Below are positions 14,101-31,758 of a stretch of DNA of 64,000 bases, piece by piece (the stretch's first letter is position 1; each line of letters starts with the position of its first letter). Both the position numbers and the translations under genes were made by a program. A model generated the notes under the pieces. It saw nothing but the letters and a program-made list of their open reading frames with translations, was not told the DNA's origin and did no database searches. The stretch lies in IMG/VR virus record IMGVR_UViG_3300042922_000643, positions 124,001 to 188,000 of that record; one strand, written 5' to 3'.

Positions 14101-17100
14101 ACTTGGATATCATCAGACTCATTCATCTTCTTGAGCTGGGCTTTAAAGATAGTTGCCATACGACGGATATTAAATTTCCAATCCCATGTTAACCGTCTCG
14201 CCTCAGACACGCTATAGGCATGGACAATCAAAGTGATCTGGCCAATACCTGCGGCAGCTTGTTTTCTCTGAGAAGAAGATTCGCCAGGATAGAGCTTGGC
14301 TGTATATCCGTTAGCTCCATGATAGAGTTGTTCCCATCCGCTTTCTTGACTAAGCAAGGACTTCAGGATGTTGGCAGCCCGTTCTCGCGTAATCATTCCT
14401 TTAGTAGCGTTCAAGTCGGAGTAAGGAATAGAACCAATAGAAATACTTGGAGCATTCTTCCATTTAGGATCACCAGAATGTTTCAGCCATAGATAAGATG
14501 CTTTCGCGTAATCATCCATGCTGGCATAGGTTAATTTTTCTTTGACCACCTTGCTTGAACTTTTTCGCTCATCGAATACAAAGCCAGCAAACAGCTCATC
14601 TATAATGGCATAAATCTCTTTATAAACTTCAAGCTTCGTTGGATTAACAAGGAACTGCTGAAGTGTTACACCACTAACTCCTGTCCAAGCATCAATTTCT
14701 GTCTGGGTTGGGAACGCAGTAACATTGCTGAAGTTCTCCATCCAGGAGTCCACAGACTGTCCTGAAGACTGTAGTGTCTTGCCAACGCCACCCCAGTTCG
14801 TTGTTGGCTCCGAGCCTTCTTCTGTCGAAAACGCAGTTCTAGCTGTTTCACTGCTGTCTTGGTTAGACATGAAAGACACTTTAGTTAGTTCAGTGCTTGC
14901 ATTACGAGCAGCCTCTGTATCTTGAGCGAGCTTATTAAACATAGCCATATTTGCATCGTCGGCATCAAAAATATTTTCGCTATCGAGCTTCGTAGTAGCT
15001 ACGAAACCAGAGTAGTCCTGTATTCTTGTCAGTCCAATCTCTGTTTCTGTTCCTGTCTCTTTTTCATACTTGTACTGTTTTAAATAGTTTCGATATGTCC
15101 ACGATGTGGAGATATAAAAGTCAGGGTCTACATATTTTGCGCCTGACGGATTGTGATAAGCGCGAATGCCCGCTTTAATATAACCGAGTGCGTTGTTTAA
15201 CTCTTGGTATGTAGGAAGTTCCAAGTCAGGATAAAGTTCAAGATCTTTCATCTTACGTTCAACAACGATAGGATCTCTACCTTCTACTGTAGAGACATGT
15301 CTCTCTTCGATCTTTGTAGAATCTGTTGCTGCAAATCCATCCAGAGTTTCTGATCTTTTTTGTGTCTTGTCAAATCCACAAAGAGTCATTTCAATCTGGA
15401 AACGGTTAGGGAATCCAGGCACAGTCCGAGTAACACAAGATTCGATCATCACGCTATTAACACCAAACAGGCGGGTCAGCTGATTCTCAAATCCAACGAA
15501 GCCTGAGGAGATTCCTAGTCTATATTTCTTAGAGTAATAATCAGACTTTTCGATAAGCTCTCGAATAGAACGGATAGCGTTACGATCATCGGTTTCCATC
15601 GTCACTTGAATATAAGGATCTTGTGATCCCATGTATTGATAAGTTGGGTGGTCCCCCATCTGAGTTGATACTTGAGCGAAGTTGTTTTCGTATGTCACAT
15701 TCATTGAAGTAATCAATACATTATCCACGTAGTAATCTTCCATGATAATAGTGCCTTCGCTTGAATTTGCTTTCTCTTGCAACTTTTGATAATTCACATT
15801 GTATGCCGTCTTCTGGAAATTTGCTTGGATCTCAGACTTATTGATCGTAACTAAATAACCCAAGTGTGTAGTATTGTTTGGGTCAAACGCATATAGATCT
15901 TGATTCTTATTATTCATAGCGACATCAGTTATAAGTAGCTTCTTTGGTATCTTAGCCCTATTGGTTTCGGCGCTTACCCGAAGAACAATCAGATCTGTAG
16001 TTCTGGATATCAATCCGAATGTACATTCCATAGGCAAGTAGAACGCATCGCTATTTGCTAAAGAGAAATTCTTTCCATAGATAGCCTCATAAACATCCTT
16101 ATTCAAAGTAGGACTGAATTTTGACGGAAAGTCTTTGCCTTTTCTGACTCTAAGAGAAGCACATCTATTCAGTTGATCAAGCGCTTGAGATACACGTTCT
16201 CCATCAATAGCCATACGGCCTAACAGGTTCTTACCATCAGCGTATTCGGTATTGAACTCGGAAGCACTGGATAGAAAGCGCAGTTCTTTGACAGAGTCCT
16301 GACGCTCAGCCAGATCGCTCTCACTTGCAATCGTAAAGTGAAAATCGTTTGTGAGTTCGCCTTCAATAGGAGCCAGATAGGATCTGTACGGATTCTTCTG
16401 ATCTCTCATTGTTTGTTGATAGTACCAACGAAACATTGGATAGTTAATTTGCTGATCAAGGAATTCTACGTGGGGCATATAAGCTTCATGATCGAACTGA
16501 GCTAGAATGAGGGTAGCCGCAATAGAATGAGGGAATCCTGGGACTGTAGCTACATTTAGGTTCACCAAAATGACATCATGAATATTCATAACTTCATTGA
16601 TGTATTCATTCTCGATAGGAAGAAAAGGCGCTTTTTTGAACTGAGCAATCAATGAACGAAGACCATCCATGTAATAGTACCCACCATCAGCCATCTTCAC
16701 AGGGTAACCGTTGATGGATTCAAGATCATGGAAATACAGCTGTAAGCTAATTGTCTGATGAGAAGATCCAGCCTTAACCATCATCGAAGACTTGGTACGG
16801 AGAGTTTTCACTTTCTCGATACTAGAGGTCGTATTCACTTGAATAGATAGCGGCGGAATAATAAACTGCACATCCCCAATACGCATATGATAAGGAGATG
16901 TCATAGATCTGCGATCATCCATACCTGAAAAGAAGTTCAGTGTATTATCCTGGATAGCTTCTGCGCCAACAACGAACTCATTTTGTTTCTGAGCTTCGGT
17001 AAGCTTAACTACAATAGGAACAACGATGCTTGTGATAGAAGGGTACAAAACGAAGTTGCCATTTTCATCAGGCAAAAGATTATTCGCACTAATCAGCGTA

Positions 17101-18335
17101 TTCTTATCGACTTCGTACCCTTTGCCAGCGAACTCTTTAACAATAGAAGATAGAGTATCTCCCTTTTTAATAATATAAGTATGAGTTGTTTTTGTTGTCA
17201 GCTCGTTGTCATAGCGCATCCGAGCAAGTTCTTCTTGAATCTTTTTTTCGGCAGCGACCTTTAGAGCTTCGTCTTCAGCCTGAATAGCCTGGACCTTATC
17301 GCTGGAGTCATAGCCTTCAACGTATTCCCAGTTAATCGTATCAAACTTTGTGTTGTTATTCTGATACTGATATGTTGCCGATGGGAAACCAAGAGGCACA
17401 TGTCTTTCTTTGCCTTGGTCATCAAAGTAAGTAAACTGCGTAGAGCTTGCAAGCAAACTTTTATTCGCATTGATGTACCATTCGCTGTCAGATAAAGCTT
17501 CGTCAGCCAGAGCATATACTGTCTTATAGACAACACCCATCCAACGGCTACCTGTTCCGTCTTTTGCGGGTGCATTATTCTTTACATCAATATCAACAAT
17601 AACTGTGCCTCCAGCAATGCTTAAGATATCGACAGTTGCTTGTTTGCCTAGCGCACCAATTTGATAGGTGGTATCCATATCGATCTTGTATTTTCTAGAG
17701 ATCTCATTATTCCGATTATCTGCATCCTCAGAAACAGAACCGTTAATGTTCTTAAGTGTCTCAGCAGTATCTACTCCTGCATAACGAATACGAATAGTTT
17801 TTCCTTCATCAAAATCATCGTATGTATTTAGGCTGTTCCCACGGCGAGATATTAAGACATCAATAGTATCTCCGTCGATAACTGTTCCTTTACCGACAAC
17901 TAACCAAGAACGGTCACCAGGGAGATGCTCCCAGACCAGGTCATATTTATTACCAAAGTAAAAAGTCTTTGTCCGTTCCTTACCGAGGTTCACGCTGTTG
18001 ATATCATACTTAGAAGGATTTAGCTCTTTCAAGATAAGATTATACGCTTGAATAGAGAGGTCAAGGCTGGAGACATTAATTCTCCCGCCCTCTGTCTCTT
18101 TAGTGTATTTCAGGTAAAAGTCTTCATCATATGTGACGCCGCTGTTCCATTTCCAGTCACTGTTCGCAGCTTCAAGCATGGCAATGACCTCAACCAAACG
18201 AGCACCTACAAAGGAAGCTACCTTATTATCTTTCCATATTGTCAATTCAGCTTTACCATCAGGAGTCAGGAAGCTCGCTTCCCAACTCTTACTATATGGA
18301 TTTCTATGTACCCGTGCTGCGTTTACTGAGATCAT
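11106..18335 (-). CDS. 2409-aa baseplate hub fusion: SNase fold + LysM + two tube-like repeats + lytic transglycosylase + gp27/GpD-like hub + hydrophobic C-terminus
   Basis: VIDGDT/RYAGVDTAE (SNase); YIIKKGDTLSSI (LysM); TVPGFP twice; LLSQESGW...AGIGQI...AVVAYN (SLT); IHLRLGYG...FNGTITE...GDPSVKPHD...VKDVTHSF (hub). Confidence 0.8.
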   Translation of the reverse strand: MISVNAARVHRNPYSKSWEASFLTPDGKAELTIWKDNKVASFVGARLVEVIAMLEAANSDWKWNSGVTYDEDFYLKYTKETEGGRINVSSLDLSIQAYNLILKELNPSKYDINSVNLGKERTKTFYFGNKYDLVWEHLPGDRSWLVVGKGTVIDGDTIDVLISRRGNSLNTYDDFDEGKTIRIRYAGVDTAETLKNINGSVSEDADNRNNEISRKYKIDMDTTYQIGALGKQATVDILSIAGGTVIVDIDVKNNAPAKDGTGSRWMGVVYKTVYALADEALSDSEWYINANKSLLASSTQFTYFDDQGKERHVPLGFPSATYQYQNNNTKFDTINWEYVEGYDSSDKVQAIQAEDEALKVAAEKKIQEELARMRYDNELTTKTTHTYIIKKGDTLSSIVKEFAGKGYEVDKNTLISANNLLPDENGNFVLYPSITSIVVPIVVKLTEAQKQNEFVVGAEAIQDNTLNFFSGMDDRRSMTSPYHMRIGDVQFIIPPLSIQVNTTSSIEKVKTLRTKSSMMVKAGSSHQTISLQLYFHDLESINGYPVKMADGGYYYMDGLRSLIAQFKKAPFLPIENEYINEVMNIHDVILVNLNVATVPGFPHSIAATLILAQFDHEAYMPHVEFLDQQINYPMFRWYYQQTMRDQKNPYRSYLAPIEGELTNDFHFTIASESDLAERQDSVKELRFLSSASEFNTEYADGKNLLGRMAIDGERVSQALDQLNRCASLRVRKGKDFPSKFSPTLNKDVYEAIYGKNFSLANSDAFYLPMECTFGLISRTTDLIVLRVSAETNRAKIPKKLLITDVAMNNKNQDLYAFDPNNTTHLGYLVTINKSEIQANFQKTAYNVNYQKLQEKANSSEGTIIMEDYYVDNVLITSMNVTYENNFAQVSTQMGDHPTYQYMGSQDPYIQVTMETDDRNAIRSIRELIEKSDYYSKKYRLGISSGFVGFENQLTRLFGVNSVMIESCVTRTVPGFPNRFQIEMTLCGFDKTQKRSETLDGFAATDSTKIEERHVSTVEGRDPIVVERKMKDLELYPDLELPTYQELNNALGYIKAGIRAYHNPSGAKYVDPDFYISTSWTYRNYLKQYKYEKETGTETEIGLTRIQDYSGFVATTKLDSENIFDADDANMAMFNKLAQDTEAARNASTELTKVSFMSNQDSSETARTAFSTEEGSEPTTNWGGVGKTLQSSGQSVDSWMENFSNVTAFPTQTEIDAWTGVSGVTLQQFLVNPTKLEVYKEIYAIIDELFAGFVFDERKSSSKVVKEKLTYASMDDYAKASYLWLKHSGDPKWKNAPSISIGSIPYSDLNATKGMITRERAANILKSLLSQESGWEQLYHGANGYTAKLYPGESSSQRKQAAAGIGQITLIVHAYSVSEARRLTWDWKFNIRRMATIFKAQLKKMNESDDIQVRSRTWEWAVVAYNKPKNFKERKLKSEYYVPVIEKWFEGRYNSTEKKFATPSAKLDNSVYSYLNNVSSTAVALIRTDREAMIKEIIRFEQQYSVIIDQRVKDERVEKISDEILMKMYKIYSQSPLVLDKNPLVLSLETAKQAPKSDLQVYQEYTTVAKALGINNLKYNETPQETWRDMFTDMCEYDQRGRMLRAFPTFQMFIIDEGRWMANYRLWDNFYGFNAITSIDVHKSRNIAADTAVVKMTNIYSNLTSRRMEDRYGDWEYSIWDNFIFGQPTQELLNARTELVDGMFLQTGARIHLRLGYGSDATSLPVMFNGTITEMDTDDLITIIAQGDGIELTNVISADPDETNDAFMKKLTEPRDLLAKLMTSKGNWFKDAINYQSGGRFFKDNPLGILHFGNPVKTPGTNASIGSIFGWHITDAQYGEAVQNIYSSNGANTFSQWTYQDGASMGVKWNGFGFLPQWSGDEMDIEMKLYGQSTWDVAQTLAYTSPDYIAAVLPFETRSTLFFGKPYYRVAYRYDSLYNWNELDSYWERVVTKEVRKPFQQFHIYNSITDIIGNKIKASEDGVYTNIIARSASGEQSLLQQADFDIRYDKQKTKVIETNLTDPSPLVPDFWTIDKQLNYYAQSVLRDSVKDMYKGTLTVLGDPSVKPHDMCHMTDIVHEMNGPFLVKDVTHSFSLETGFITMITPDAVVVVDDMSTISRATWFCSASIGLSSYVLGKYLAARTMSKIMGTAAVSKAAQWTGSVTGNAMLRLASMLSPEKGDADFGRFKELLREYDDVKKPGAIRSEAKVIEEMGQVLEKMKGKVSTIEGTGLKKLGKVSRKGLVSVSEGIVKNLGEGKNAMNFLKVGGFLVGGPLIAVDVLAGLAVSYIAATWAEAFLRNKKARQAVMIMPMKYQQRNFTAGINGYAGSVVGSKPGKMDQFYMGAGYAGADDWTAALGKTLNYFFDNQSLNPFDEEAGLGSVDYYINSGERTESSGSNDTYIEESWTNNE

Positions 18336-18349: not shown

Positions 18350-21300
18350 CTATGAGATGATACGACCTCCGCTAATCGCTTGGGATACAATCCCTTGTAG
18401 CCATTGCTGATCTAGGTTCGTCGTATTATCTTGTACATTCATATTCATGTTTAACTGCATTGGCATCATAGCGTTAAGTTCTCCATGCACCAGTGCAGCG
18501 ATTTGTTGTTCACTCATCGTGGAGGCCTGCTTGCTGTTAATCGAGATATTAATGTGTTCTCCATCCTCGTTCGGTGTAACTCGTGCAGTAGGAGATTTAT
18601 CAAGCATTCCCATCGCAGAACCGCGAGGCATAGACTCTTCAATAACTCCATCCTTACCTCGAACTGTTTCTTCAGGAGTAGGACCACCTCTAGTGATTGC
18701 ACTAGCAGCCCAAAGCCCTCCGAAGACTAAACCAGCAGCTCTGATTGTGCCAAACCCTGCCGAACCTCCACCGCCAAAGCCTGCGGCAAATCTGTCAGCT
18801 AACTCCCGTACTTTTTCCCCAGAATTTTTAGCGGTAGTAGCTCCGCCTAGTAGTTCCTCGCTAAGAGGTGTTGCCTGAGATTCACGAAGTAGACTACCCA
18901 TATTTGGCTCTTCCAAGTTAGATGCTAAAGCCTTACTAGAGTATGATAAGGGTTTTTCTAGTGATTCCGCAATACGAGGATCAAAATTAATTAAATGTTG
19001 CATACCAGGTGTTTCTAAAATTGAAGTTCCTTTGCCTCGCAGCATGTTACTCAAGTCTTCTGGGGATTTGATCCCTTCAGAAACGAATAGTTTATCGGAT
19101 ACGTCATTGAAGAGTCCGCGGCTTCTTCCTGTATACTGCCCTGTCTTTTGCAGGCTATCAAGCATGTGTTCAAATTCAAATGGTTGAGCGTCAGTTGGAG
19201 TGAAGCCAGCGCCTGAAGCAGTATCGAAAATTCCAAGCACGGAGTTTGCTTTACGGATACGCTCAATACCATCACCATCAGGACGATTGATACCGCCTTT
19301 CAGGTCTTCTAAGGCAGCATCCCGTTGGATGAGGTTTGTTCGTGCATATTCCTGAGCAGCTTCAAGTGTTGCGCCTTCGTTATTCGCAATATAGCTCTGT
19401 ACGAAGTCCTCTATCTTGAATTTTTTGGAAGAGATTGCTTTCTGGGAAACGGCTCGACCAAAGTCATCCAAGTGACTTCTCATTGTTGATAGTTCAGCAG
19501 AGCGCTCTTCGGTTAGCATTCCGCCAGACTTGAGTGTCTCTTTAACCCCGTAAATCAAACTCGAAAGCTTATAACGAGTATTATCGAGGACCCCTACATC
19601 CGCTTTACCTAAACGTGCGATAGCTGTTTCAGCATCTTGAAGCGGACCGACTTTAGGTGCCCATTGCTCGTGGAATTCTTTACGGAACTCTGCACTTCTC
19701 CACAGCTCTTGAACTGTTACCCCTTGGGCCGATGCCTTGCTCTCGATATCTGAGCGAACTTCTTTAGCGACAGCTTCAAATTCTGGCAACGATCCTTGAT
19801 GGATTTTAGCCATAGCTTGATGAACTTCTGCGCCCTCTTGGTATTTATAATGAGCAAGCACATTAGAGATAAAGTCACCATCATAGTCGGCATTTAGAGA
19901 AGTTGCTGTACCAACAGTGAATAGTCCTGTTCGTGCGTTCGCTTTTGTCAGTTCGTTTGAGACCTCAACCTTAAGTACAGCGTTCGTACTTTCATGGATC
20001 GTTGGATAACGGTTTACAAATCCATATAAACCCTTCTCTTTGATTTCCGCAAGTGCTGCTTCGCGCATGAACATATTCTTCGGGATACGATCACTTGTCT
20101 TAAGATTCTTATTGGCTTCTTTCCATTCTGTAGAAAGTACATTATGTCTCTCTGCATTAGTAGCTCTTAGAACCTTGTCTTCAGCGCCATCGATCATTTC
20201 CAGCATCCGCTGTTCGCTAACGTACAGGGAACCTTCTTTAAAGTTTCCACTCGCTAGAGGATTCACAGTCTGAGCACGAAACCGACCTGACATGTCCTGC
20301 TGAGATGTTAAGAGCTTCTTCGCGATACTACCTTTAGATGAAGTGATCTCATATCGAACCTGCTCATCATAATTACTAATTGCATTACGAAGGGCTGTCT
20401 CTGTTTCAGGTGTCTGAGCTGCCTGATACTCTTTCGATTTTGATGCAATCTTAATTTGCGCTTTCTGAAGATCAGTAAGTACTGCCATACTCTCATCGGC
20501 ATTAATAGGCACACTAGCGATATGAGAATCAAAGAAACGAACATATTTTCTACCGAAGTTGTCCCCTGGCAATTCGAAGAGCGCTGTTCCACCATTTTGA
20601 CGGATAGCGTCACTCATCTTTTTACCAGTTGCTTTGCCGTTCTCAAAGAGTTCGACATGCTCTCCGCCCATTTGAATTACGGTATTACTATAATCTCCAA
20701 CAGTCCGCGTTTGTCCTTTGTAACCTGACTGTGGAGGGTCAGTGAAAGTGTGTGCGGATATTTCAGTGATACCGTTATTAATACGGCCTGCACGGATACC
20801 GTCTCTATCATTGATATGGAAAGAATCACCACGTGTACGAATAACAACTTCGCCCTCACGCAAGATCCCCTTTTGCTGAAGGTCAGTATCTGTTAAGTCT
20901 AAGGAAGCACTAATGAGATTACGAGCATATCCATCGATGTCTCTGTTCTGCGCACGAGCAGCTGCACTTACATGTTTATTTACCCATGAAGAGACAGCAT
21001 TCCCTTCGCCTAAGAAACGGTCTGCGCGATCACTGATTGCTCCTGTTTCTTTAATCCCCCAGCTAACAAGACCATCAATGCTTTCAACTTTTTTCATCCG
21101 TCCCGTACGAGGATCAAAACGTCCCTCGAAGGTAGCGCCCATTGAGTTTTCCCAGTTATAGACATCTGCGTTACCAAATGATTCCTGTCCATATTCAATG
21201 GTATTCTTGAGGAAGCCACCAGCACCAATCCATTTGTTCTCTTCTTTGTCAAACTCAGAAAGGAAGTTTTGGACACTCTGAAGATTGAATGAGCCCTGGG

Positions 21301-24300
21301 CATTTGCACCCAGATTAGAGTTCATAATCAACTGACCTTTAGAAAGCTTAACATCTCCCTCACTAAGACCGAAATGTTGTGTCATAAACCCACGGATTGC
21401 ACCCATCGCATTATCCATAGCTTCGACTCTTTTAACGTCTCCAACAGTAAATTGTTTATCGATTTGCTTTTGCGCTTCATCAATAACGAGTCGAACTTTT
21501 GAGTTCACAAATGATCCGTACTGTTCCTTCGAGAACTTCGCTTTTGGAAGAACGACATCCGCTTCAATGCCTAGCGCGTTAAGGATTTCATCAGAAGCAA
21601 CACGAGCCGTAACACGGTGACCAGCCTCAGAGATGATCTTTACACCATCAGACATGGATTGAAGCTCTTCGAAGATTAAGGAGTTGTTTGTAGTATCCAG
21701 ACCTTTAAAGATTGCTTTTTCACTACGTCCATTATAACGATATGATTCTCTAACCTTATCATCCTTCATTAAAGCTCCAACAGTGATATGCCCCTTTGTT
21801 GGGCTTCCGATACGATTGTCACGATCTAACAGAGACATGATATCGCGCTCAGATTCAGTTAGAGTTTCTTTAACACGGATAATACCATCTTCGCCTATCT
21901 CAGTACCGAGCATGTCCATCAATCTACGATCAATATTTGCACCTTCAGCCATACGTATACGGCTTTCGCGAGAAGTAACAAGCCCTTTGGCATAGCTTTC
22001 ACGAACAAGAACCATACCATCATAAGTTGTCATCATCGGATTGGACTTGCCCATCGTTTTTTCCATCATACCTTTAAGCTGGGAATCGTCGATATAGGCT
22101 GTCCGAGTACTCAGATATGCAAGTTCTTGGTCGTATATATTCTTACCAACATCTGTTACTAGTCCAGGAGTCAGATATCTACTGATCTGGTCAGCACTCT
22201 TTCCTCCACGACTTAGACCATCAACTACACGATTCCGATCAAGTGGAAGATAGTTGACAGACTTTTGGATATTTTCCTGCGTCATGGAGTTCCAGAAACC
22301 AAAAGGTGTGTCTTGTCTAGCATCGACACCAACCGCAGAAAGAATATTGTTGGCGGCTAAGGTATCCTTAACGTTCTGGAAATTGATATGGAGATTCAGT
22401 TTGCTTGCATAGGTAGGCGCTTCTTGATCGAACTTTCGACGTTCCTTCATGTTTAAAGAGTCGAGGAATGATCCTTTGAATTTGCTGGAGGCTTCATACT
22501 CTTTCTTTTTAAGAGCTTCACTACCATATTGATCTGCATACCAGCTTTTAGCAAGACCTGCTACATCAATCTGACCTGTGCGCAATCGTTTTGCACGGAG
22601 TGATTTACGAGCCTCTTCCTTCGTTAAACCATCTTCACTCATATATTTATTGTTCATAGAGAGAGATCCTATAGTTTGACGAACAATATTATTTCCCCAA
22701 GATTCACTTTCAGGTGCGCGACCTTGAAGTACAAGGTCTTTAATTTTCTTCGAGGAGCGAATCAGTTGCTGGCTCACAACATCGACACCAGAACCTAGCA
22801 TAAGCTTGCCGCGGTTGCGTCCCGTGCTCATCTCCATGGTCATAAGACGAGCAGATCTTTCCTGCCCAGGAACGAATACGTTGTTTTTCTCATTCAGAAG
22901 GGGCACCTTGATTGCGGCGACTTTACTGTGTTCAATAATCTCGTTTCCTTTAAGGCTGAAGATCTCTGCGGCTTGCTTTTTATTAGTCAGCGCCATTACT
23001 AGACCTTTATGCTTTTCATCATAAACAAATCCAACGGCAACGTCGTCAGAGGAGAATGCTCTTGCAAGATCCGTAAGTGTTTCAGAGATGCCTTGGCTTA
23101 CCAATGAAGAGTTTTTAGCTCCCGTGGATTCGAGTATATTATTGAATACCTTGTCATGAGTCTGGATCATCTGGTTAAAGATACTGTCTGTAGGATTGAT
23201 CAGGCCCTGACCTTGCCAGGAATTCGAGCGGAATGGAACGGCAGGAAGGATTGCGCGTTGATGAATCGATGCACGCTTACCGCCGTACCCACTACGAATT
23301 TTTTGAGCACGCAAAGGGTTCACATTAAAAGGATCTTCAACGGTCATAGTACTCATACCCATACCGTTGAGTCCTTTAGCTTGTTCATAGGTATGTTCTT
23401 GATGAATACGACCTGCAATTTCAGTGTAAAGTGTACCTAAAGAGTCATGGTCATCTAGGCGATCAATCAATCGGTACATTTCTTTAGCCGCTGAACCTGT
23501 AAGTCCTGAGCGACCTTTCGTACGTAGCTCATCGATCATTGTTTTGAGACGCTTTTTCGTAATACGCATCGATGGCTTGCCCATATCATAGCCGCTACCT
23601 ACAACACGTTTGATCCCCGACTCAACACTAGCAGGATCTTTTAATGAAATGTTATGTATTTCCCCATCCATCTTAATAGGGATTACTTTTTGGCTATCTG
23701 GAAGCTGAACTTCCATTGTGTTTCCACCAAATTCAGCGTCAATGATCTTACGATAGTTTTTCAGAGCTACGCCTTGGGCATATTTAGCACTAGAGCTGTC
23801 ACCTTGAAGCGGAGATTTCTCCAATTCAGAGATAAAGTCAAGGATATGATCCTTTTCCCCTGCTACACGCTTCTTCAAAAGCTGGTAGTCTCGAACAAAT
23901 TCAGGTTTTGCTTCTTGGAAGACGCCCTTATTGTCCATGTATCCAAGTGCTTTTCGGACTTCCTCTGGGGATTTGCCAGCTGCTTCAGCTTCAACCCCGC
24001 CAATCATTCGTTTAATCTGTGTAACGCCGCCTTCAGGACTGAATAAACGGTCCCAACGACGACGAGCGCGGTCAGCCATAGTGTTTCCTTGCAGTGTTTT
24101 ACGCTCAATTTCAGATAGATGATCCATAGGAATGAAATGCTGCCCAAAAACAGAACGCAATTCATCTTCGCTTTCTCTAAAAATCATGTGATAAAGGTCT
24201 TCGCCATCAGGAGTTTGGTTGCGAAGTACAGCTCCAAAGTGGCTTTTCCCATCAATCTGGAAATCTTTAACTGTTTTTTCTAATGTATAAGCTGTATTTT

Positions 24301-25618
24301 TATAAATTGGGTTCGGTTTAATATTTTCATACACAGGAACAAGCTGACCTTTTTCGTCTCGCTTATAAACCATATCAAATTTACCATTACGTGATGCTTC
24401 AAACGAAGACATGCCACTAACCGAGAATAAGGAGTCGCCCATTTTAAAAGGAGTTCTATCCCACGAAGCACTGAGAGGACCTTTCACTCCAATACCATTC
24501 GGACCAATCAGATTCTGAGAAGAAACCAGCTTGTTAAAAATGTCCGCGGAAGTGTTCAAGTCATCAATCGCTGTATGCGCAACACCCTTAGAGATACCAA
24601 GCATGTCTGCAACCTGCTCTTGTTTCAGGTTCTTACCAAATATACTAGCTTGATTGCGGAAAAACGTTCTAAAGATCTGAAGATTATCCACTACTCGACC
24701 TGAACCGAAGCTGTTTACTAACGCTGTTAGCTCTTTCTGTTGCTTAGGACTAGTAACTAGCGGGTTTAGATGGTTCATTAAATAGTCTTTCATCATTGGA
24801 ATATCGTAAGCATCAATGTTTGCGCCACCAATAATCGCATTCTTTCGCCCACCAATAACTCGTGCAAGCTCACTTACAACTTGTTCTGGTGAACTGCCGT
24901 AAGATAAGTTAGTACGACCTTTATGCATCCGCTTTACTTGGTCAGGAGTAAAGATAAATCCTGTAGGAGCCTGCTTGTCTCGAAGCTGTCTATTAAGATA
25001 GGTAGCGCCGTTTTTACCTTTACTGAAATAACCATTGCCAAATGGATCATCATCCCCATAGAGGATAAGGTCATTCAACGTACGGCGTTCATCTTTTGAC
25101 AATGAGCTTGTGGCATAACCATTACTCGCTACTTTCTGAAGCAGAGAATCAATATGAGCAAAGACATTGTCTGTAGGCCGAACAAGAAGAGATACCTCTT
25201 TGGACTTTGGCATTCTTTCAAAGGTATAATTGCTGGAAACTTTCCGCTGTCCAATCGCTATTTCTGTTGGGGAATACCAAGGGAGGCTATCGCTACCTTT
25301 GCCTCCGAAAGTACCCAGGTTTTCTATGTCCATCATAAATACATTGTCTCCAGGTCTTACGGATAACAAATTTTCGATGGTCTTTTGCGGACTCGAACCA
25401 AACCAATTGCCAGGGCTTACGCTACGGTAGATACCAAGCTCTTCAGCGGGAGCCCCAAGCATACCTTGTGCATTTCGGGCATAAATCTCCCCAAGCGGTT
25501 CGCTTCTTTTAAAAGATCCGCTTCGAATGCTAGACCAGACCAGGCGAGAATTCTCGCCCGATCCTATGTATGTATAATTCAGTTTAGCTTTCTTCGCTGC
25601 GTCTTCGTAACTAGCCAT
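18350..25618 (-). CDS. Single-chain double-psi-beta-barrel (multisubunit-type) RNA polymerase with N-terminal DEDDh exonuclease; putative virion RNAP
   Basis: NADYDGD at 19874-19894; FVNRYPTIHES at about 19988-20020; SKGSIAKKLLTSQQDMSGRF at about 20280-20340; beta-like TYDGMVLVRE and GVKIISEAGHRVT; DEDDh motifs MMDIENLG / GANIDAYD / AHTAIDD. Confidence 0.88.
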   Translation of the reverse strand: MASYEDAAKKAKLNYTYIGSGENSRLVWSSIRSGSFKRSEPLGEIYARNAQGMLGAPAEELGIYRSVSPGNWFGSSPQKTIENLLSVRPGDNVFMMDIENLGTFGGKGSDSLPWYSPTEIAIGQRKVSSNYTFERMPKSKEVSLLVRPTDNVFAHIDSLLQKVASNGYATSSLSKDERRTLNDLILYGDDDPFGNGYFSKGKNGATYLNRQLRDKQAPTGFIFTPDQVKRMHKGRTNLSYGSSPEQVVSELARVIGGRKNAIIGGANIDAYDIPMMKDYLMNHLNPLVTSPKQQKELTALVNSFGSGRVVDNLQIFRTFFRNQASIFGKNLKQEQVADMLGISKGVAHTAIDDLNTSADIFNKLVSSQNLIGPNGIGVKGPLSASWDRTPFKMGDSLFSVSGMSSFEASRNGKFDMVYKRDEKGQLVPVYENIKPNPIYKNTAYTLEKTVKDFQIDGKSHFGAVLRNQTPDGEDLYHMIFRESEDELRSVFGQHFIPMDHLSEIERKTLQGNTMADRARRRWDRLFSPEGGVTQIKRMIGGVEAEAAGKSPEEVRKALGYMDNKGVFQEAKPEFVRDYQLLKKRVAGEKDHILDFISELEKSPLQGDSSSAKYAQGVALKNYRKIIDAEFGGNTMEVQLPDSQKVIPIKMDGEIHNISLKDPASVESGIKRVVGSGYDMGKPSMRITKKRLKTMIDELRTKGRSGLTGSAAKEMYRLIDRLDDHDSLGTLYTEIAGRIHQEHTYEQAKGLNGMGMSTMTVEDPFNVNPLRAQKIRSGYGGKRASIHQRAILPAVPFRSNSWQGQGLINPTDSIFNQMIQTHDKVFNNILESTGAKNSSLVSQGISETLTDLARAFSSDDVAVGFVYDEKHKGLVMALTNKKQAAEIFSLKGNEIIEHSKVAAIKVPLLNEKNNVFVPGQERSARLMTMEMSTGRNRGKLMLGSGVDVVSQQLIRSSKKIKDLVLQGRAPESESWGNNIVRQTIGSLSMNNKYMSEDGLTKEEARKSLRAKRLRTGQIDVAGLAKSWYADQYGSEALKKKEYEASSKFKGSFLDSLNMKERRKFDQEAPTYASKLNLHINFQNVKDTLAANNILSAVGVDARQDTPFGFWNSMTQENIQKSVNYLPLDRNRVVDGLSRGGKSADQISRYLTPGLVTDVGKNIYDQELAYLSTRTAYIDDSQLKGMMEKTMGKSNPMMTTYDGMVLVRESYAKGLVTSRESRIRMAEGANIDRRLMDMLGTEIGEDGIIRVKETLTESERDIMSLLDRDNRIGSPTKGHITVGALMKDDKVRESYRYNGRSEKAIFKGLDTTNNSLIFEELQSMSDGVKIISEAGHRVTARVASDEILNALGIEADVVLPKAKFSKEQYGSFVNSKVRLVIDEAQKQIDKQFTVGDVKRVEAMDNAMGAIRGFMTQHFGLSEGDVKLSKGQLIMNSNLGANAQGSFNLQSVQNFLSEFDKEENKWIGAGGFLKNTIEYGQESFGNADVYNWENSMGATFEGRFDPRTGRMKKVESIDGLVSWGIKETGAISDRADRFLGEGNAVSSWVNKHVSAAARAQNRDIDGYARNLISASLDLTDTDLQQKGILREGEVVIRTRGDSFHINDRDGIRAGRINNGITEISAHTFTDPPQSGYKGQTRTVGDYSNTVIQMGGEHVELFENGKATGKKMSDAIRQNGGTALFELPGDNFGRKYVRFFDSHIASVPINADESMAVLTDLQKAQIKIASKSKEYQAAQTPETETALRNAISNYDEQVRYEITSSKGSIAKKLLTSQQDMSGRFRAQTVNPLASGNFKEGSLYVSEQRMLEMIDGAEDKVLRATNAERHNVLSTEWKEANKNLKTSDRIPKNMFMREAALAEIKEKGLYGFVNRYPTIHESTNAVLKVEVSNELTKANARTGLFTVGTATSLNADYDGDFISNVLAHYKYQEGAEVHQAMAKIHQGSLPEFEAVAKEVRSDIESKASAQGVTVQELWRSAEFRKEFHEQWAPKVGPLQDAETAIARLGKADVGVLDNTRYKLSSLIYGVKETLKSGGMLTEERSAELSTMRSHLDDFGRAVSQKAISSKKFKIEDFVQSYIANNEGATLEAAQEYARTNLIQRDAALEDLKGGINRPDGDGIERIRKANSVLGIFDTASGAGFTPTDAQPFEFEHMLDSLQKTGQYTGRSRGLFNDVSDKLFVSEGIKSPEDLSNMLRGKGTSILETPGMQHLINFDPRIAESLEKPLSYSSKALASNLEEPNMGSLLRESQATPLSEELLGGATTAKNSGEKVRELADRFAAGFGGGGSAGFGTIRAAGLVFGGLWAASAITRGGPTPEETVRGKDGVIEESMPRGSAMGMLDKSPTARVTPNEDGEHINISINSKQASTMSEQQIAALVHGELNAMMPMQLNMNMNVQDNTTNLDQQWLQGIVSQAISGGRIIS

Positions 25619-25632: not shown

Positions 25633-28600
25633 TTATCCAAATATTGAACCCATGTTATTGTTAAACTCCGAGACGATTTCATCTCTACGGTCTTTGATAA
25701 AGTCCATTGCAAGACTTATCTTATTCTCACCCTGTAAAGGTGAAGTCGTCATACTCACCTGCGCATCCTTAAGCCCTGCGCCTTGAAGAATCTTTTCGAT
25801 TCTAGTGATATCAATCGACATGCTAGGGCGGAATGGTTCAATTCGATTAACCCCAGAAGAGTCTGCATTCTTTACATCATCCTGCCACATTCCAAACTCT
25901 GTCAGTTCTAGACCTTCGTTTCGAACGACTTTAAGTTTGATATCGTCAAGATTGACATTGGCATCCCAGCCCTCCCACTTTGCATTAGGGAGATAGTGAT
26001 CCTTAAAGTACGAGTTTAAGCTCTCAGGCTCGTCTGTGTCCATACCCCATTTTGCTTGGTAGAACCGACGCTGATTCTTAGGAACCAACCGAAGAATTTC
26101 TTCTCTTTCTTTCGGAGCCGCAGTCATAAATTGAGTAAAGAATTCACGGTCCTTACTAGGAAGAGCTCGGAAGATCTTTGTCATGTCTCCATTCGGATCT
26201 GCCCCGTATAGTGTGGACTCATACTGCTCTTTATATTGCAGAGCTTGCATCGTCTTCGAACCGATACGGTAAGAACCGCGGTCTTGATCGATCATCTTGA
26301 GTCGGCTACGAACATTATCTAACTGTTCCTCGACTACGTCCTCGTCAACATAACCTATCTTCTTCGCCATGGAAAGCCATTTTTTCGAAGCATCCAGATA
26401 ATTACGAAGTTTTTTATTCTTTTGACCGCGGTCACCGCTGTCTCCGACAAGTTGATCGACGTCGATCCCCTCTTCGTCCTTAGCTCGCTCAGCAGCTCTC
26501 TCGTAGAGACCTTTATACTTCATGTATTTCAGAACATCGAAATACTCATTAATAGCACGTTCTTTTTCTCTTCGCTTAGGAATCCAGGCGTAGTCATCTC
26601 CACCAGGAGAACGACGACCTACAAATTCGTCGATGCTACGTGCAGCCGCGAGTCCACCAAAGACAGCAGCTCCAACCCACTTACCATAATACTTACCTGC
26701 GCCCTTCTTACCAAAGAGCCATCCAATACCATAGCCTTGTGCTGCACCAACCAGAGGATTCTGAGAGGCTGCGGTTTCCAACATCGGCTGAATCCATCCA
26801 CCCCAAGGATCTGTCCAAGGTCTCCAAGCTTTACCATAGACTTCATTCTTCTTGTACATTTCAAGTGGTGAACGAACCTGCATAAACTTGTCTGCAATTA
26901 CCCCAACGATTGGGATCTTCGGAATAGCATCATGAGTCATCCATTCCATCATGCGGCCTACGGTGACCTGCGTCTTGTCATACATAGCGATAGTGCCTAC
27001 ACCCGTATTTTCACCTGAAGCATTTACGCCGTCTTTCTTATCAAACTTACGAGCCAGCATTGCATTAACGGATTGCCCTTTGGTACTCATATAGAAAGGA
27101 TTGTGGTCATTGCCGTTACTATATACAACAGCGTGCATCGTGTTCATCGTATCGTCACGGACTCTATTGATTGGGTCAGCGTCTACACCAATCGTAATTT
27201 TAGCGCCCTCGTAGATATACTGCTGGAGCCATTCTTTCGCCTTCTCTGCATCCGCTTTTACCTTAACACCTGCAAGACGAATTGGATTGTTTGGATGTTC
27301 CGCAGTTAAGAAAGTATTCGCATCAAGAACCTTAGTAACAGTCACTTTCTGGTTATCGACTTCTGCATTGCGGAATTTGTTTGGATAGAAGTGGTATTTA
27401 TCTTTCTTAGCAGCCACTTGATCACGGACTTCTGCGTATTCATCTTCCATGCCCGTAGTCAGTGCGCCTGCTTCTTTCATCTGAGAAACCATTCGACGCC
27501 AGTATTTATATTCATCAGAGTAAGGTGCAACGTCAGCCAGGATCTTGAATCGATCAAATGCACCATAGTCTCCAAAGGTGTCAGGATGGAGCTTGTTAAG
27601 GCTCTCATACGCAGCGCCAGGAAGTCTCATTTCACCCTTAGCAACTTTAGTATATGGGTCTCCATGTTGGAAATCGATGAAGTAGTTAACGCCTGGCAAC
27701 CAATCAGGCATCTTATTTTGCAGAGGATTGTAATACTGTTTACGTGGATCTTTTGCTAGATAACGACGAGCAATTTCTGAGAACTCGCCGCCGAAGAATC
27801 CATCGGCACCGCCCATTTCCATATCCCAGAAGGAACGGCCATAACTCATCATACGGCTGGAGCGGTCTAACTTCTGACTCCGAATATTCGTATCTATTCC
27901 CATTGCCATATTTGCAGAGAAACCATAGATACCCGCTTGTTCTGTAAGGCCGTACCACATGTCTCCAAGGACCTGTGAGCCGCTGTACGGGCTTCCAATG
28001 TCCTTAAGGTCTGCTACAAAGTCTGGGTCACGAAGCGACTCCAGGCTGCTCATAGGGCGTGCTGGGAGCAACATACCGCCACCAGGTCCTACACCAGCAC
28101 CAGCGCCTGTTCCTCCAGCACCAGCAGCAACTATACCTGCGTTGATAGATCCGAGATTGTCCATAGCCAAAGCACCTGTAGTATAAGCGCCTGAGCTACT
28201 AGGACCACTTTTCCCATACCGAGTTAGCTGCGGAAGAGAAGGAGCATCTAATGAAGAAAGACCTTCACCAAAACCACCTCCGAAGGAGGAAGACTCAGAT
28301 AGCAGGTTGTATCCACCCGCAGGCATGAACTGAATAACGCCTTCACCTGTCGCGCTATCATACTGAGAAGTAATGTAATCATTAACTTCTTTCTGGTACT
28401 CACGGTGAGCCTTCGACAGGTCTTTGTTTTCACGATATGGATTGAGTAGACCACCAACTGTTCGATTTAGAGCAGGCCCAATAAGCGGGATCATTCCCAG
28501 CTCTTGAATGCCTCCACTAATTGGATAAGGGCGATCTTCAGCATGCTTTTTCTCATAGTGATCTGGATCAGTCAAGAAGTGCTTAATTGGAGCAAACGGA

Positions 28601-31600
28601 TGAGTAAGAGTAGGCATCCAACTATTAGCCCAGTACTCACTCTCACTACCGTACATTGTGTCTGTGAACTTATAATCAGACTTCATGCGGCGATACCAGT
28701 TAGGCTGGAAGCGGTCTATCTTTCCGCCTTCCCAAGGGGTTGTTGAGCCTATTCCCCACCAGCGGCCTTTGCGGACAGCGTCTTCTCCGCTTTCATAGTA
28801 ATGACGAAGTTCATCCTCACTACGAGTGTCCCCAAAGAATCCAAATGATCCATACTTAACAGCAGCACCAATAGGTGTTTTCCATAGCTGATCTAAGCCA
28901 GGTATCAATTCTGCGAACTCTTTACCGATCTGATTAATGCCAGTAAACTGTTTAAACCATGCAGTATCCAAAGACATGTTCGCATATGTATCCGCGGCTT
29001 TGTCACTGACTCTATCACCAGTCATACCGTCCAGGTGTTGCAACTGCTGAAGAGCAACATATGGAAGAACAATTCGCCGTCCAAACTGGTTGGTTATGAT
29101 ACTCTGCATCGATCCTCTATTTTTTTGAGAGAGACCAAGACCGATCTTCGCCAGGGAGTTGTCCAGACGTTCTGCAAAGTAGTACGGAATCATAGATGCC
29201 ATAGTAAAGTCTTGAATATTTTTGCGGCCTGCAAATGGTTGACCTAGAACCTTCATAGCAGAACTTGTTGATGCTTTTAGAGGACTTACTCCGTCTGTAA
29301 TTTGACGATTAATGTCTTCAAGCATCCAGTTCTTACCTCGGCCTTTATTCATGACGAGGTTACCGACTAAACCAAAAGGCTGTGGAGGTTGATCGCCAGG
29401 GCCCATGGACCATATTGGTGTGTAGTTTGTTACGGTATTAGAAAGAACTTCTCTGAAATCATCACGACGTATTAGATCGCCCTTAAAAGCTTCTAATGCT
29501 TCAGTCTTAGCTTGCGGACCTAAACGATAAACATCGTCCCAGTAGCGGTGTAACTCGTTAAGGACAGACAAATCCCCAACTTCTCTTGCTGCTTTCTCAG
29601 GAAGATTACCGTTCTTGATTCCTTCGCGAACGAGATCTGCTACAGAAACCTGAGCAGTTTGCTCGATCTGTTCAATAGCGTGCTGATGGATTAAGCGTTT
29701 AACATCGTCAATTCTATTTACTATATTAGTTTCGTGTACGTCTAAAGGCTGTAGAGGTCCCATGAGGTAAGGAGCATTGTCAGAGACAATACGCTTACCC
29801 TTTAGAAATTCCCCTTGGTTGTTGTGGTACTTCTCCCAAGTCTCGCTGACCTGACTGCCTACTTTACGCATGGCAATCCGACCATTCTTTTCACTCATAC
29901 CCGCACGAATACGGCCTAGAGACCCCATAATATCATCAGGCCCAAATAAGTTTCCTAGATCGATATTCGACTCTCCGTACGCTTGCTTCGCATAACTATT
30001 TAAGAAGTTTGCAGTATCATCGGACAAGGGCTTTGCTCTGGAGTTAATTTCTGCGTAGATATCCTTGTAAGAAGATTCTAAATCTTTGATCGTTGCATCA
30101 TCTTTAAAAATTGTTTTGTAGCGGTTACGCATCCAGTTTGGATCATCAAACTTGGTGAATGTGCTTAATGCTCGACTAAGAATAGTTTCAGACTCTTGTC
30201 CGCCGATATCAAATAATCGTTTAATGAATCCGCGATTAGCTCCAGCGCCCGTATGTAAGTTTGCAATGGAAGACATTGCTCTTGGAATAGCACCGAATCT
30301 AGCAGAGGCCAGCGTTACATTATCCTTAACAATTTCACCACTAACCAAATCCATAACTTTATTATTAGAGTACAGATAGTCTCGGCTCAGTACACCTACG
30401 GCAGCGTCTTGATTATGAGCCCGTGGATGTCTTAAGGTTTCGGCCACCCCATGTAAAGAAGGCTGGATAGTTCCTCGTTGCATCAAGTATGTTTTTGGAG
30501 CTTCTTTCATTGCTTCGTATGTGGTCCAGTGTGCAAGATCCAATGGGTTAAATCTCAGGAAAGGGACTTGGAAGTTTTGTTGAACGAACGAAGCAGACTT
30601 ATATAGACCTTCATGGAGACTTCTAGTATCTACGATATGTCCCGCATCATTAATGAATATACGGTGGTCTGCAACAAGATCAAGGAATCTGCTGTCTTTA
30701 TTGGCCATTGCAGCGATTTTATTACCTATACGGCCATTGACAGCCTCACCATTAATACGGCGGCGAATGACAGAGTCATTATCAAAGAGCTTATTGACCC
30801 ATTTTCCTGATTCATTCTTCTCTAGTAAATCTTTATTTACAACGGGACGGTATCCTGCACCACCCATCATTTTCGTAAGGAATGTTTCTTTCTTTTGATG
30901 GCGAGAAACAAAGTCATCAATGAGCTTGTTTTTCAGATTAACACTGCCCTGTACAGGAACACCATCAATAGATCCAGGCCGTTTTGCACCTCGAAGAACA
31001 CGACGGTCTAGTCGTCTAGCATCTGCTCTTTTTTGGAGAGTAGTGAACATTCCCTCAACAAATTCTTTACGAGCTGTCTCATCAGGAAGTTCTATCGAGA
31101 ATGCATTGTTATTCTTAACTTTATTTTCAGGACTGTATCTCTTCAACATATTCTCAATTCGTTCTACTCCAGGGTTCAGGAAGAAGTCCGAATCTTGAGC
31201 GTGAAGGTCATTAAGAATTTCACCAAGTCCTCTTTCAAAATGCTGAGGGAATTTGGTCTTGAGATCATTCATTGCCAACGTCTTTTGAGTAGAACGAATA
31301 TAACTTCGGCCTGTCGAAGAGAGATCAGTAATCAGCTGGCTATAATCTGTTTCAATATTAGTAGGCATACCGCCTAGTATACTTTGTTGTCTACGTATAG
31401 CTGTTTCGGTACTTCGAGATAAAGAGGATTCTAATCGCTGATTAAACCTCTCTGGGTTTAAAAAATGAGATACAGGGGAGCGTCGGTCTAAAGCATGATC
31501 AAGTGCTTTGATACCTGACATTGCATCCCCGATGAGGCCACCTATCTTAGGGGCCTGGTGAAGGTATGAAGCCGTTCTAAGAGCTGCACCCCCAACGATA

Positions 31601-31758
31601 CGGCCTGCGTCTCCAAGCGTCTCAGACGCCATCCTACGAGTTGCTGGGGACAGTGCGAGGGTGGCAGCAGCGCCAAGTGCAGCAATACCCCAGACCCCGT
31701 GATGAGTCTCTTGTTCTTTCTCACTATTCAGGTATCTTGAGTATTGGTTATCCGCCAC
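25633..31758 (-). CDS. 2041-aa tape-measure-like protein with a degenerate SNase-fold domain
   Basis: First gene after the tail chaperones; helical with Gly-rich hydrophobic segments at both ends; VTKVLDANTF...IRLAGVK...VNAMLARK at about 27040-27350. Confidence 0.6.
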   Translation of the reverse strand: MADNQYSRYLNSEKEQETHHGVWGIAALGAAATLALSPATRRMASETLGDAGRIVGGAALRTASYLHQAPKIGGLIGDAMSGIKALDHALDRRSPVSHFLNPERFNQRLESSLSRSTETAIRRQQSILGGMPTNIETDYSQLITDLSSTGRSYIRSTQKTLAMNDLKTKFPQHFERGLGEILNDLHAQDSDFFLNPGVERIENMLKRYSPENKVKNNNAFSIELPDETARKEFVEGMFTTLQKRADARRLDRRVLRGAKRPGSIDGVPVQGSVNLKNKLIDDFVSRHQKKETFLTKMMGGAGYRPVVNKDLLEKNESGKWVNKLFDNDSVIRRRINGEAVNGRIGNKIAAMANKDSRFLDLVADHRIFINDAGHIVDTRSLHEGLYKSASFVQQNFQVPFLRFNPLDLAHWTTYEAMKEAPKTYLMQRGTIQPSLHGVAETLRHPRAHNQDAAVGVLSRDYLYSNNKVMDLVSGEIVKDNVTLASARFGAIPRAMSSIANLHTGAGANRGFIKRLFDIGGQESETILSRALSTFTKFDDPNWMRNRYKTIFKDDATIKDLESSYKDIYAEINSRAKPLSDDTANFLNSYAKQAYGESNIDLGNLFGPDDIMGSLGRIRAGMSEKNGRIAMRKVGSQVSETWEKYHNNQGEFLKGKRIVSDNAPYLMGPLQPLDVHETNIVNRIDDVKRLIHQHAIEQIEQTAQVSVADLVREGIKNGNLPEKAAREVGDLSVLNELHRYWDDVYRLGPQAKTEALEAFKGDLIRRDDFREVLSNTVTNYTPIWSMGPGDQPPQPFGLVGNLVMNKGRGKNWMLEDINRQITDGVSPLKASTSSAMKVLGQPFAGRKNIQDFTMASMIPYYFAERLDNSLAKIGLGLSQKNRGSMQSIITNQFGRRIVLPYVALQQLQHLDGMTGDRVSDKAADTYANMSLDTAWFKQFTGINQIGKEFAELIPGLDQLWKTPIGAAVKYGSFGFFGDTRSEDELRHYYESGEDAVRKGRWWGIGSTTPWEGGKIDRFQPNWYRRMKSDYKFTDTMYGSESEYWANSWMPTLTHPFAPIKHFLTDPDHYEKKHAEDRPYPISGGIQELGMIPLIGPALNRTVGGLLNPYRENKDLSKAHREYQKEVNDYITSQYDSATGEGVIQFMPAGGYNLLSESSSFGGGFGEGLSSLDAPSLPQLTRYGKSGPSSSGAYTTGALAMDNLGSINAGIVAAGAGGTGAGAGVGPGGGMLLPARPMSSLESLRDPDFVADLKDIGSPYSGSQVLGDMWYGLTEQAGIYGFSANMAMGIDTNIRSQKLDRSSRMMSYGRSFWDMEMGGADGFFGGEFSEIARRYLAKDPRKQYYNPLQNKMPDWLPGVNYFIDFQHGDPYTKVAKGEMRLPGAAYESLNKLHPDTFGDYGAFDRFKILADVAPYSDEYKYWRRMVSQMKEAGALTTGMEDEYAEVRDQVAAKKDKYHFYPNKFRNAEVDNQKVTVTKVLDANTFLTAEHPNNPIRLAGVKVKADAEKAKEWLQQYIYEGAKITIGVDADPINRVRDDTMNTMHAVVYSNGNDHNPFYMSTKGQSVNAMLARKFDKKDGVNASGENTGVGTIAMYDKTQVTVGRMMEWMTHDAIPKIPIVGVIADKFMQVRSPLEMYKKNEVYGKAWRPWTDPWGGWIQPMLETAASQNPLVGAAQGYGIGWLFGKKGAGKYYGKWVGAAVFGGLAAARSIDEFVGRRSPGGDDYAWIPKRREKERAINEYFDVLKYMKYKGLYERAAERAKDEEGIDVDQLVGDSGDRGQKNKKLRNYLDASKKWLSMAKKIGYVDEDVVEEQLDNVRSRLKMIDQDRGSYRIGSKTMQALQYKEQYESTLYGADPNGDMTKIFRALPSKDREFFTQFMTAAPKEREEILRLVPKNQRRFYQAKWGMDTDEPESLNSYFKDHYLPNAKWEGWDANVNLDDIKLKVVRNEGLELTEFGMWQDDVKNADSSGVNRIEPFRPSMSIDITRIEKILQGAGLKDAQVSMTTSPLQGENKISLAMDFIKDRRDEIVSEFNNNMGSIFG

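Follow-up and report, generated by a model that had tools for sequence, protein, structure and literature searches.

A 2,422-residue protein encoded at the tape-measure position of the tail module of a jumbo contractile-tailed phage contains a conserved predicted RNA polymerase core of the cellular type, together with an exonuclease domain. The phage therefore probably delivers its own transcription enzyme into the host with its DNA, although catalysis and packaging are inferred from sequence, predicted structure and synteny. The gene lies in a 64,000-nucleotide window (positions 124,001 to 188,000 of the IMG/VR record IMGVR_UViG_3300042922_000643). The reading frame at window positions 18350-25618 on the minus strand is uninterrupted and comprises 2,422 codons plus the stop. 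The sequence-only reading had proposed that both barrels of a multisubunit-type RNA polymerase are carried by this single chain, and every motif it rested on is present: TYDGMVLVRE at aa 1198-1207, GVKIISEAGHRVT at aa 1325-1337, EADVVLP at aa 1352-1358, SKGSIAKKLLTSQQDMSGRFRAQTV at aa 1761-1785, FVNRYPTIHES at aa 1867-1877, and NADYDGD at aa 1909-1915 (nt 19874-19894). The protein and its neighbours are organized as follows.

18350..25618 (-), the whole ORF, 2,422 aa, the second of three giant genes in the tail module
24524..25366 (-), N-terminal DEDDh (DnaQ/ExoI/TREX-like) 3'-5' exonuclease domain, aa ~85-365
22322..24523 (-), aa 366-1099, with no Pfam, PHROG or PDB sequence match, moderately conserved within the family
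19229..22321 (-), predicted polymerase module, aa 1100-2130
21494..22051 (-), beta-like barrel (barrel B), aa ~1190-1375, with [ED]1200-G, K1327-x7-[RK]1335 and DVVLP
19844..20326 (-), beta'-like barrel (barrel A), aa ~1765-1925, with SGRFR, NRYPTIH and NADYDGD
19874..19888 (-), DYDGD metal-binding triad, aa 1911-1915
19424..19645 (-), two long helices after barrel A carrying the invariant residues R2002, G2009, N2013, Q2059 and K2065, which may be the bridge-helix or funnel equivalent
18353..18841 (-), C-terminal module, aa ~2260-2422, with a Gly-rich hydrophobic stretch, PTPE, PTAR, the INISIN strands and a terminal DN...W motif, the most conserved part of the protein
31764..32816 (-), two paralogous tail-chaperonin-like genes immediately upstream of the giants
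25633..31758 (-), giant 1, 2,041 aa, of unknown function, counterpart of 0305phi8-36 gp145
11106..18335 (-), giant 3, 2,409 aa, hub or cell-wall-degrading protein, counterpart of 0305phi8-36 gp147

The co-occurrence of these motifs exceeds chance expectation. The DxDGD pattern occurs only once in all six frames of the 64-kb window. RxP followed 30-50 residues later by DxDGD appears in 39 of 20,000 shuffles of the protein, and in 24 of 20,000 when the upstream K-x7-[KR] is added. The protein belongs to a family of about 66 clusters at 50% identity, nearly all of whose members are 2,334-2,564 aa long, and the contigs checked for ten clusters reach 200-250 kb. A scan of viral contigs found only six loci, one of them the window itself. 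We used HMM-guided alignment to compare up to 63 family members, many of them only about 20% identical to the window protein. The eight residues that define two-barrel RNA polymerases (PMC2919709) are invariant or nearly so. D1911, D1913 and D1915, corresponding to the metal-binding triad of barrel A (Rpb1 D481/483/485; beta' NADFDGD), are each conserved in 63/63 members, as is G1914. R1870 and P1872, which lie 41 residues before D1911 and correspond to Rpb1 R446/P448 of the NRxPxxH motif, are likewise each 63/63. In barrel B, K1327 is 56/56 and R/K1335 is 53/54, matching the two basic residues eight apart in Rpb2 (K979/K987). D/E1200 is 54/55, followed by G1201 at 46/55 and a hydrophobic strand; its equivalence to Rpb2 D837 rests on motif order and not on a scored alignment. 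The GRFR motif is only semi-conserved, with R1779 at 26/61.

A single-sequence search of the PDB found nothing, whereas the family profile aligns over RxPT...DxDGD to phiKZ gp55 (7ogp_A, E=1e-3 to 4e-3), where the corresponding stretch reads HRNPTLQ, and more weakly to bacterial (8x6f_D, E=7e-3) and AR9 beta'. PF00623 is the only Pfam family that recurs among members, being hit by 8 of 23. All sequence matches to known RNA polymerases are below curated thresholds: the Pfam score is 13.5 bits for the whole protein and 14.6 for the aa 1100-2130 slice, against a cut-off of 25.3. An AlphaFold2 model of aa 1100-2130 built from five sequences reached a pLDDT of only 46 and was unusable, but a 46-sequence alignment gave pLDDT 85.8 and pTM 0.83. 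Foldseek with this model gave 463 PDB hits at E<=1e-3, and the top 50 are all RNA polymerase beta' chains, with E about 1e-6 and probability 1.00. The model has pLDDT 93-97 over barrel A and 86-95 over the core strands of barrel B. The beta fold of barrel B is less firmly supported: hits in BFVD include beta'-type (RPO147-like) as well as beta-type viral subunits, among them poxvirus RPO132 at E=5e-6 and several 'subunit beta' entries with 400-560 aligned columns, but these hits carry no query coordinates, and a sequence profile of this barrel alone finds no beta subunit in the PDB. Neither the predicted structure nor the conservation of the aspartates refutes the two-barrel reading.

The sequence-only reading overlooked a conserved N-terminal exonuclease. 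The Exo I (D97-x-E99), Exo II (N267...D272) and Exo III (H348...D353) residues of DEDDh enzymes occur in order and are conserved in 51-52 of 52 members. The domain matches phrog_192 at E=4.6e-9, and the family profile hits ExoI, TREX1 and PolC exonuclease in the PDB at E about 1e-4. Hydropathy analysis shows no strong transmembrane segment in the protein.

The genomic setting is that of a contractile-tailed phage, with terminase, portal, major capsid protein, two sheath genes, three tube genes, two tail chaperonins, three giant genes and baseplate J. The same order holds in KLEB27-3, WH1, 0305phi8-36 and four metagenomic contigs, and full-length relatives at 28-42% identity occupy the same synteny in Bacillus jumbo myoviruses and in metagenomic contigs. 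Both chaperonin-like genes match phrog_29362, and the same two-gene arrangement was described for 0305phi8-36 orf143/144 (Hardies 2007). Giant 1 has no Pfam, PHROG or PDB hit and is not paralogous to the polymerase-bearing protein. Giant 3 matches phrog_20474 at E=1.5e-225 and has weak LysM hits; a gp27-like hub is described by Hardies 2007. The sequence-only reading placed the gene between the tape-measure-like and hub genes. It is instead itself the positional counterpart of 0305phi8-36 gp146, annotated as a hypothetical tape measure and detected in virions by mass spectrometry, although no canonical tape-measure domain was found in any of the three giants. The C-terminal module aligns end-to-end with the last ~160 aa of gp146 (E=2e-8 in a three-protein search). 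Two relatives are labelled 'structural protein'. Support for virion packaging is indirect; gp146 lacks the polymerase module, having no DxDGD and no middle-region match, and no biochemical or proteomic data exist for the present protein.

We consider it likely that the gene encodes a giant virion protein of a ~250-kb phage, in which an N-terminal exonuclease precedes a single-chain two-barrel RNA polymerase, with the beta-like barrel first, and a C-terminal module that ties the protein into tail assembly. Under this hypothesis, the protein is built into the particle through its C-terminal module, leaves through the tail tube at infection, and transcribes the first phage genes independently of the host enzyme. 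Later genes are probably read by host RNA polymerase redirected by phage sigma factors. The 91% of the KLEB27-3 genome that was examined contains two sigma factors, no YonO-like gene and no second polymerase copy. A folded polymerase core of roughly 115 kDa is unlikely to fit inside a tail tube, and its storage is unexplained, as it is for P23-45. Precedent is provided by the tape-measure-fused virion RNA polymerase of P23-45 (PMC10770324).

Other explanations appear less likely. An active polymerase might serve mainly as an envelope-anchored motor pulling the ~250-kb genome into the cell, might make primers, or might copy nucleic acid together with the exonuclease as a proofreading pair, by analogy with the two-barrel DNA polymerase PolD. 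The exonuclease and polymerase are fused in every one of the 52 near-full-length (>=2,150 aa) members examined, transcription coupled to genome translocation has been proposed for P23-45, and PolD, which also appears in the structural comparisons of PMC10770324, indicates that the two-barrel fold can probably make DNA. However, the motifs are those of RNA polymerase beta', namely [AG]D[FY]DGD and NRxPT[IL]H with the invariant Arg that in cellular enzymes appears to read the ribose 2'-OH. The top 50 structural hits are RNA polymerases and not PolD, and Hardies 2007 argued that transcription alone is too slow to internalise a genome of this size. It is more doubtful still that the protein is a non-virion polymerase that merely happens to be encoded in the tail module. 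No direct proteomic evidence exists for any polymerase-bearing member, and the basis of the 'structural protein' labels is unknown, but the gene is invariably placed between the tail chaperonins and the hub, apparently co-transcribed with late structural genes, and a late-made enzyme could not serve early transcription unless it were packaged. The homology of the C-terminal module to that of gp146 and the nearly constant length across the family also speak against this reading. A catalytically dead relic used as a structural or spacer domain, although compatible with the tape-measure position, the constant length and the absence of the module from 0305phi8-36, is very unlikely given the invariance or near-invariance of the catalytic residues in up to 63 clusters sharing only about 20-45% identity overall, a pattern indicative of selection on chemistry rather than on shape, which the exonuclease residues also show.

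A more speculative and rather improbable possibility is that the three modules act together as a self-contained genome-entry machine. The C-terminus would hold the protein at the tail-tip or membrane channel, the nuclease would resect the first-entering genome end to expose a single-stranded promoter or template, and the polymerase would both transcribe the first genes and help reel in the 250-kb genome; alternatively, the pair might form a proofreading two-barrel polymerase. BFVD hits to a 'minor tail protein' of an uncultured siphovirus and to an Acinetobacter jumbo phage protein suggest, equally tentatively, that polymerase modules hidden in tail proteins may be a widespread, overlooked way for phages to start infection.

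Only one case of a tape-measure-locus protein carrying an RNA polymerase is established, in a thermophilic siphovirus reported in 2024. The present protein would extend this principle to contractile-tailed jumbo phages whose cultured relatives infect Bacillus, and would define a new, deeply divergent family of single-chain cellular-type RNA polymerases. Members whose source names were checked are named only 'structural protein', 'virion structural protein' or 'DNA polymerase III epsilon subunit-like protein'. In the literature found, there is no report of a polymerase in the tail proteins of this lineage, nor of a DEDDh exonuclease fused to this kind of enzyme.

The closest analogue is gp96 of Thermus phage P23-45 (PMC10770324), a single-chain two-barrel RNA polymerase with a DxDGD triad, embedded in a giant protein at the tape-measure locus and proposed to transcribe pre-early genes on entry. 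P23-45 is a siphovirus with a non-contractile tail, and its polymerase is N-terminal in a 5,002-aa protein that also has metallopeptidase and membrane domains but no exonuclease, whereas here the polymerase sits in the middle of a 2,422-aa protein of a jumbo myovirus. No sequence similarity between the two was detected, as PDB sequence searches gave no hits other than beta'-type and exonuclease chains, even at E<=10. [quoted passage not shown] Bacillus phage 0305phi8-36 gp146 shares the gene position, after two chaperonins and one giant and before the hub, a similar length (2,537 aa), the C-terminal ~160 aa and a DEDDh-like domain, which in gp146 lies mid-protein. That phage carries a separate YonO-like gene, gp99, near the genome end, which WH1, Edson and the examined 91% of KLEB27-3 lack; the present clade may instead start transcription with a delivered enzyme. 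SPbeta YonO and QDE-1-type polymerases (PF05183) also have both barrels in one chain and the same eight invariant residues, but the profile-profile comparison with this family is not significant (hhalign E=0.17, probability below 1%) and no PF05183 hit was found; the present family looks closer to beta'-type enzymes. Corynebacterium glutamicum NCgl1702, a 2,169-aa beta::beta' fusion of a putative mobile element (PMC2919709), is a giant single chain with the same beta-then-beta' order and only the barrel, switch-2 and funnel motifs recognisable; as the family profile found nothing outside the family among 1.84 billion proteins at E<=1e-3, any link would be remote. The split multisubunit RNA polymerases of the phiKZ and AR9 jumbo phages give the best sequence-level hits to barrel A (7ogp_A, 7s01_d), and those phages also package a virion RNA polymerase, but their enzymes consist of four or five separate polypeptides and are packaged in the head rather than encoded in the tail module.

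The region 18350-25618 on the minus strand of the window is a single uninterrupted ORF of 2,422 codons, the middle one of three giant minus-strand ORFs. Every peptide from which the sequence-only reading had inferred a hidden RNA polymerase is present in the translation at its correct residue number, and the NADYDGD motif maps to nucleotides 19874-19894. The DxDGD motif occurs only once in all six frames of the window, and the combination RxP-(30-50)-DxDGD arises in 0.2% of shuffles of this protein. PHROG scans place the ORF within a structural module with the following features, in order on the minus strand:

49782-51587 (-), large terminase
45131-47260 (-), portal
41206-42309 (-), major capsid protein
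two sheath paralogues (-)
three tube paralogues (-)
32328-32816 (-) and 31764-32303 (-), two paralogous chaperonin-like genes
25633-31758 (-), giant 1, 2,041 aa
18350-25618 (-), giant 2, 2,422 aa, the polymerase-like protein
11106-18335 (-), giant 3, 2,409 aa
a peptidase or lysin (-)
baseplate proteins (-), including a baseplate J homologue at 8116-8919

A DNA-repair-exonuclease-like gene (47276-48157, minus strand) lies between the portal and the terminase, an anti-repressor-like gene (57967-58758, minus strand) lies upstream of the structural module, and no tRNA genes occur in the window. The portal ORF (709 aa) also matches a head-maturation-protease family over aa 386-700, and overlaps the next ORF (43711-45201) by about 70 nt. 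Three real minus-strand genes, those of the major capsid protein (41206-42309), its neighbour (42377-43681) and a tube paralogue (34278-34862), each have an almost full-length mirror ORF on the plus strand (41212-42312, 42383-43675 and 34272-34865, respectively), probably as a result of codon bias that avoids the reverse complements of stop codons. Giants 1 and 2 together have 4,463 residues and contain no cysteine at all, against 0.3% in giant 3.

The window lies on a contig of about 250 kb (the IMG/VR record is 251,543 bp, and a 254,273-bp copy is also listed), so the phage is a jumbo phage with a contractile tail. The only cultured relatives are three Bacillus jumbo myoviruses, KLEB27-3, WH1 and Edson, which are 28-31% identical over the full length and have the same gene order; four metagenomic contigs show this order as well. 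In KLEB27-3 the counterpart of giant 1 is split into genes of 1,340 aa and 677 aa with a small gene between them (gp031-gp033, positions 12647-19800 of the KLEB27-3 locus L001), while giant 2 is never split in any of the eight loci examined. The architecture is that of Bacillus phage 0305phi8-36, which has the chaperonins orf143/144, gp145 (1,930 aa), gp146 (2,537 aa) and the hub-lysin gp147. The gp146 protein is annotated as a 'hypothetical tape measure protein' and was found in virions by mass spectrometry. The polymerase-like protein is therefore the positional counterpart of the annotated tape measure itself, and not, as the sequence-only reading proposed, a gene lying between the tape measure and the hub.

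A profile of aa 1100-2130 searched against 1.84 billion representative proteins found 66 clusters, nearly all of 2,334-2,564 aa, with no cellular RNAP or YonO among them. The source names seen are 'structural protein', 'virion structural protein' and 'DNA polymerase III epsilon subunit-like protein'. For the ten clusters looked up, the longest contigs range from under 10 kb to about 247 kb, five of them being above 200 kb. In an HMM-guided alignment of these members, many of which are only about 20% identical to the window protein, only 26 columns of the 1,031 are at least 85% conserved, and these include exactly the signature of two-barrel RNA polymerases: K1327 is conserved in 56/56 members, and R1870, P1872, D1911, D1913, G1914 and D1915 in 63/63 each. 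Two further signature positions are conserved as a residue class rather than as one residue, R/K1335 in 53/54 and D/E1200 in 54/55. The signature positions correspond to Rpb2 D837, K979 and K987, and to Rpb1 R446, P448, D481, D483 and D485, the eight residues shared by all known members of the superfamily (PMC2919709). The beta-like barrel (barrel B) precedes the beta'-like barrel (barrel A). The GRFR motif, which the sequence-only reading had also matched to beta', is only semi-conserved, with R1779 in 26/61. Further invariant residues (G2009, N2013, Q2059, K2065) lie in long helices after barrel A.

Similarity to known polymerases is weak at the level of single sequences: the window protein finds nothing in the PDB, and Pfam gives only a sub-threshold PF00623 hit. 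Family profiles, on the other hand, hit the beta'-like subunit of the phiKZ non-virion RNAP (7ogp_A, E=0.0012-0.0044), aligned from the RxPT motif to DxDGD, as well as bacterial beta' (8x6f_D, E=0.007) and, more weakly, the beta' of AR9 and B. subtilis. When members are scanned one by one, PF00623 is hit by 8 of 23, and no other Pfam family is hit by more than two. A profile-profile comparison with a YonO-family alignment, comprising SPbeta-type YonO, BUCT082, Perkons and 0305phi8-36 gp99, picks the same region but is not significant (E=0.17). The family is therefore not YonO-like, and at sequence level it leans toward beta'-type enzymes.

An AlphaFold2 model of aa 1100-2130 built with 46 diverse sequences reached pLDDT 85.8 and pTM 0.83 (against pLDDT 46 with five sequences), with 93-97 over barrel A and 86-95 over the core strands of barrel B. 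Foldseek comparison of the model with the PDB returned 463 hits at E<=1e-3, of which the top 50 are all RNAP beta' chains, from Thermus, E. coli, the cyanobacterial gamma subunit and AR9, at probability 1.00 and about 260-280 aligned columns. Against BFVD, the best hit is a family member (26% identity, E=2e-53), followed by a whole-module match to a 'minor tail protein' of an uncultured siphovirus (A0A8S5SD80_1, E=3.9e-20, 1,051 columns, 13% identity) and a partial match to an uncharacterised protein of Acinetobacter jumbo phage ME3 (A0A172Q021_2). Similar hidden polymerases may thus sit in tail proteins of other phage groups. After these come both beta'-type (poxvirus RPO147 type, giant-virus 'subunit') and beta-type (poxvirus RPO132, several 'subunit beta') proteins. 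As the Foldseek matches are not resolved to query coordinates, the beta-type fold of barrel B and the mutual geometry of the barrels are supported only indirectly, and a sequence profile of barrel B alone finds no beta subunit. Within these limits, the predicted structure does not refute the two barrels proposed by the sequence-only reading.

The N-terminus of the protein (aa ~85-365) is a DEDDh exonuclease: it matches phrog_192 at E=4.6e-9, the family profile hits ExoI, TREX1, PolC exonuclease and DnaQ, and residues D97, E99, N267, D272, H348 and D353 are conserved in 51-52 of 52 members. The C-terminal ~160 aa are the most conserved part of the protein, and align end-to-end with the C-terminus of 0305phi8-36 gp146 (NC_009760 52623-60236, corresponding to 22623-30236 of the locus L015). 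This matches the remark of Hardies that only the last 60 residues align among the tape-measure candidates of that lineage. The gp146 protein also has an unannotated DEDDh-like domain at aa ~1198-1493, but no polymerase module and no DxDGD. Instead, 0305phi8-36 has a separate YonO-like gene, gp99, near its right end. No gp99 homologue was found by tblastn in KLEB27-3, WH1 or Edson. We also examined 91% of the genome of KLEB27-3, the closest cultured relative (OM634661.1), where no YonO-like ORF, no second copy of this polymerase and no other annotated or detectable second RNA polymerase are found, but two sigma factors are annotated (gp089, 103068-103910, and gp210, 179700-180716). This suggests two alternative solutions within one lineage, and a cascade in which a delivered polymerase acts first and the host polymerase, with phage sigma factors, acts later, although both points are inferred.

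Pending biochemical and proteomic confirmation, the protein is most likely a virion-delivered single-chain RNA polymerase for the first phage transcripts, tied into tail assembly by its C-terminal module. It appears less likely that an active polymerase serves mainly in genome translocation, in priming, or in proofread copying together with the exonuclease, and an enzyme that is not packaged is more doubtful still. A dead structural relic is the least probable, as the invariance of every catalytic residue argues against it.

We found no paper reporting a polymerase in these proteins. The survey of viral two-barrel RNAPs in the P23-45 study (PMC10770324), a list of genomes with two RNAPs, does not include WH1, KLEB27-3 or 0305phi8-36, and Iyer et al. 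2021 credit 0305phi8-36 only with the YonO-like enzyme. The principle of a polymerase inside a giant protein of the tape-measure locus is known from one siphovirus, P23-45, whose gp96 (PMC10770324) is the analogue of the delivered polymerase proposed here. The sequence family, the setting of a contractile-tailed jumbo phage, the mid-protein position of the polymerase and the fused DEDDh exonuclease are the new elements.
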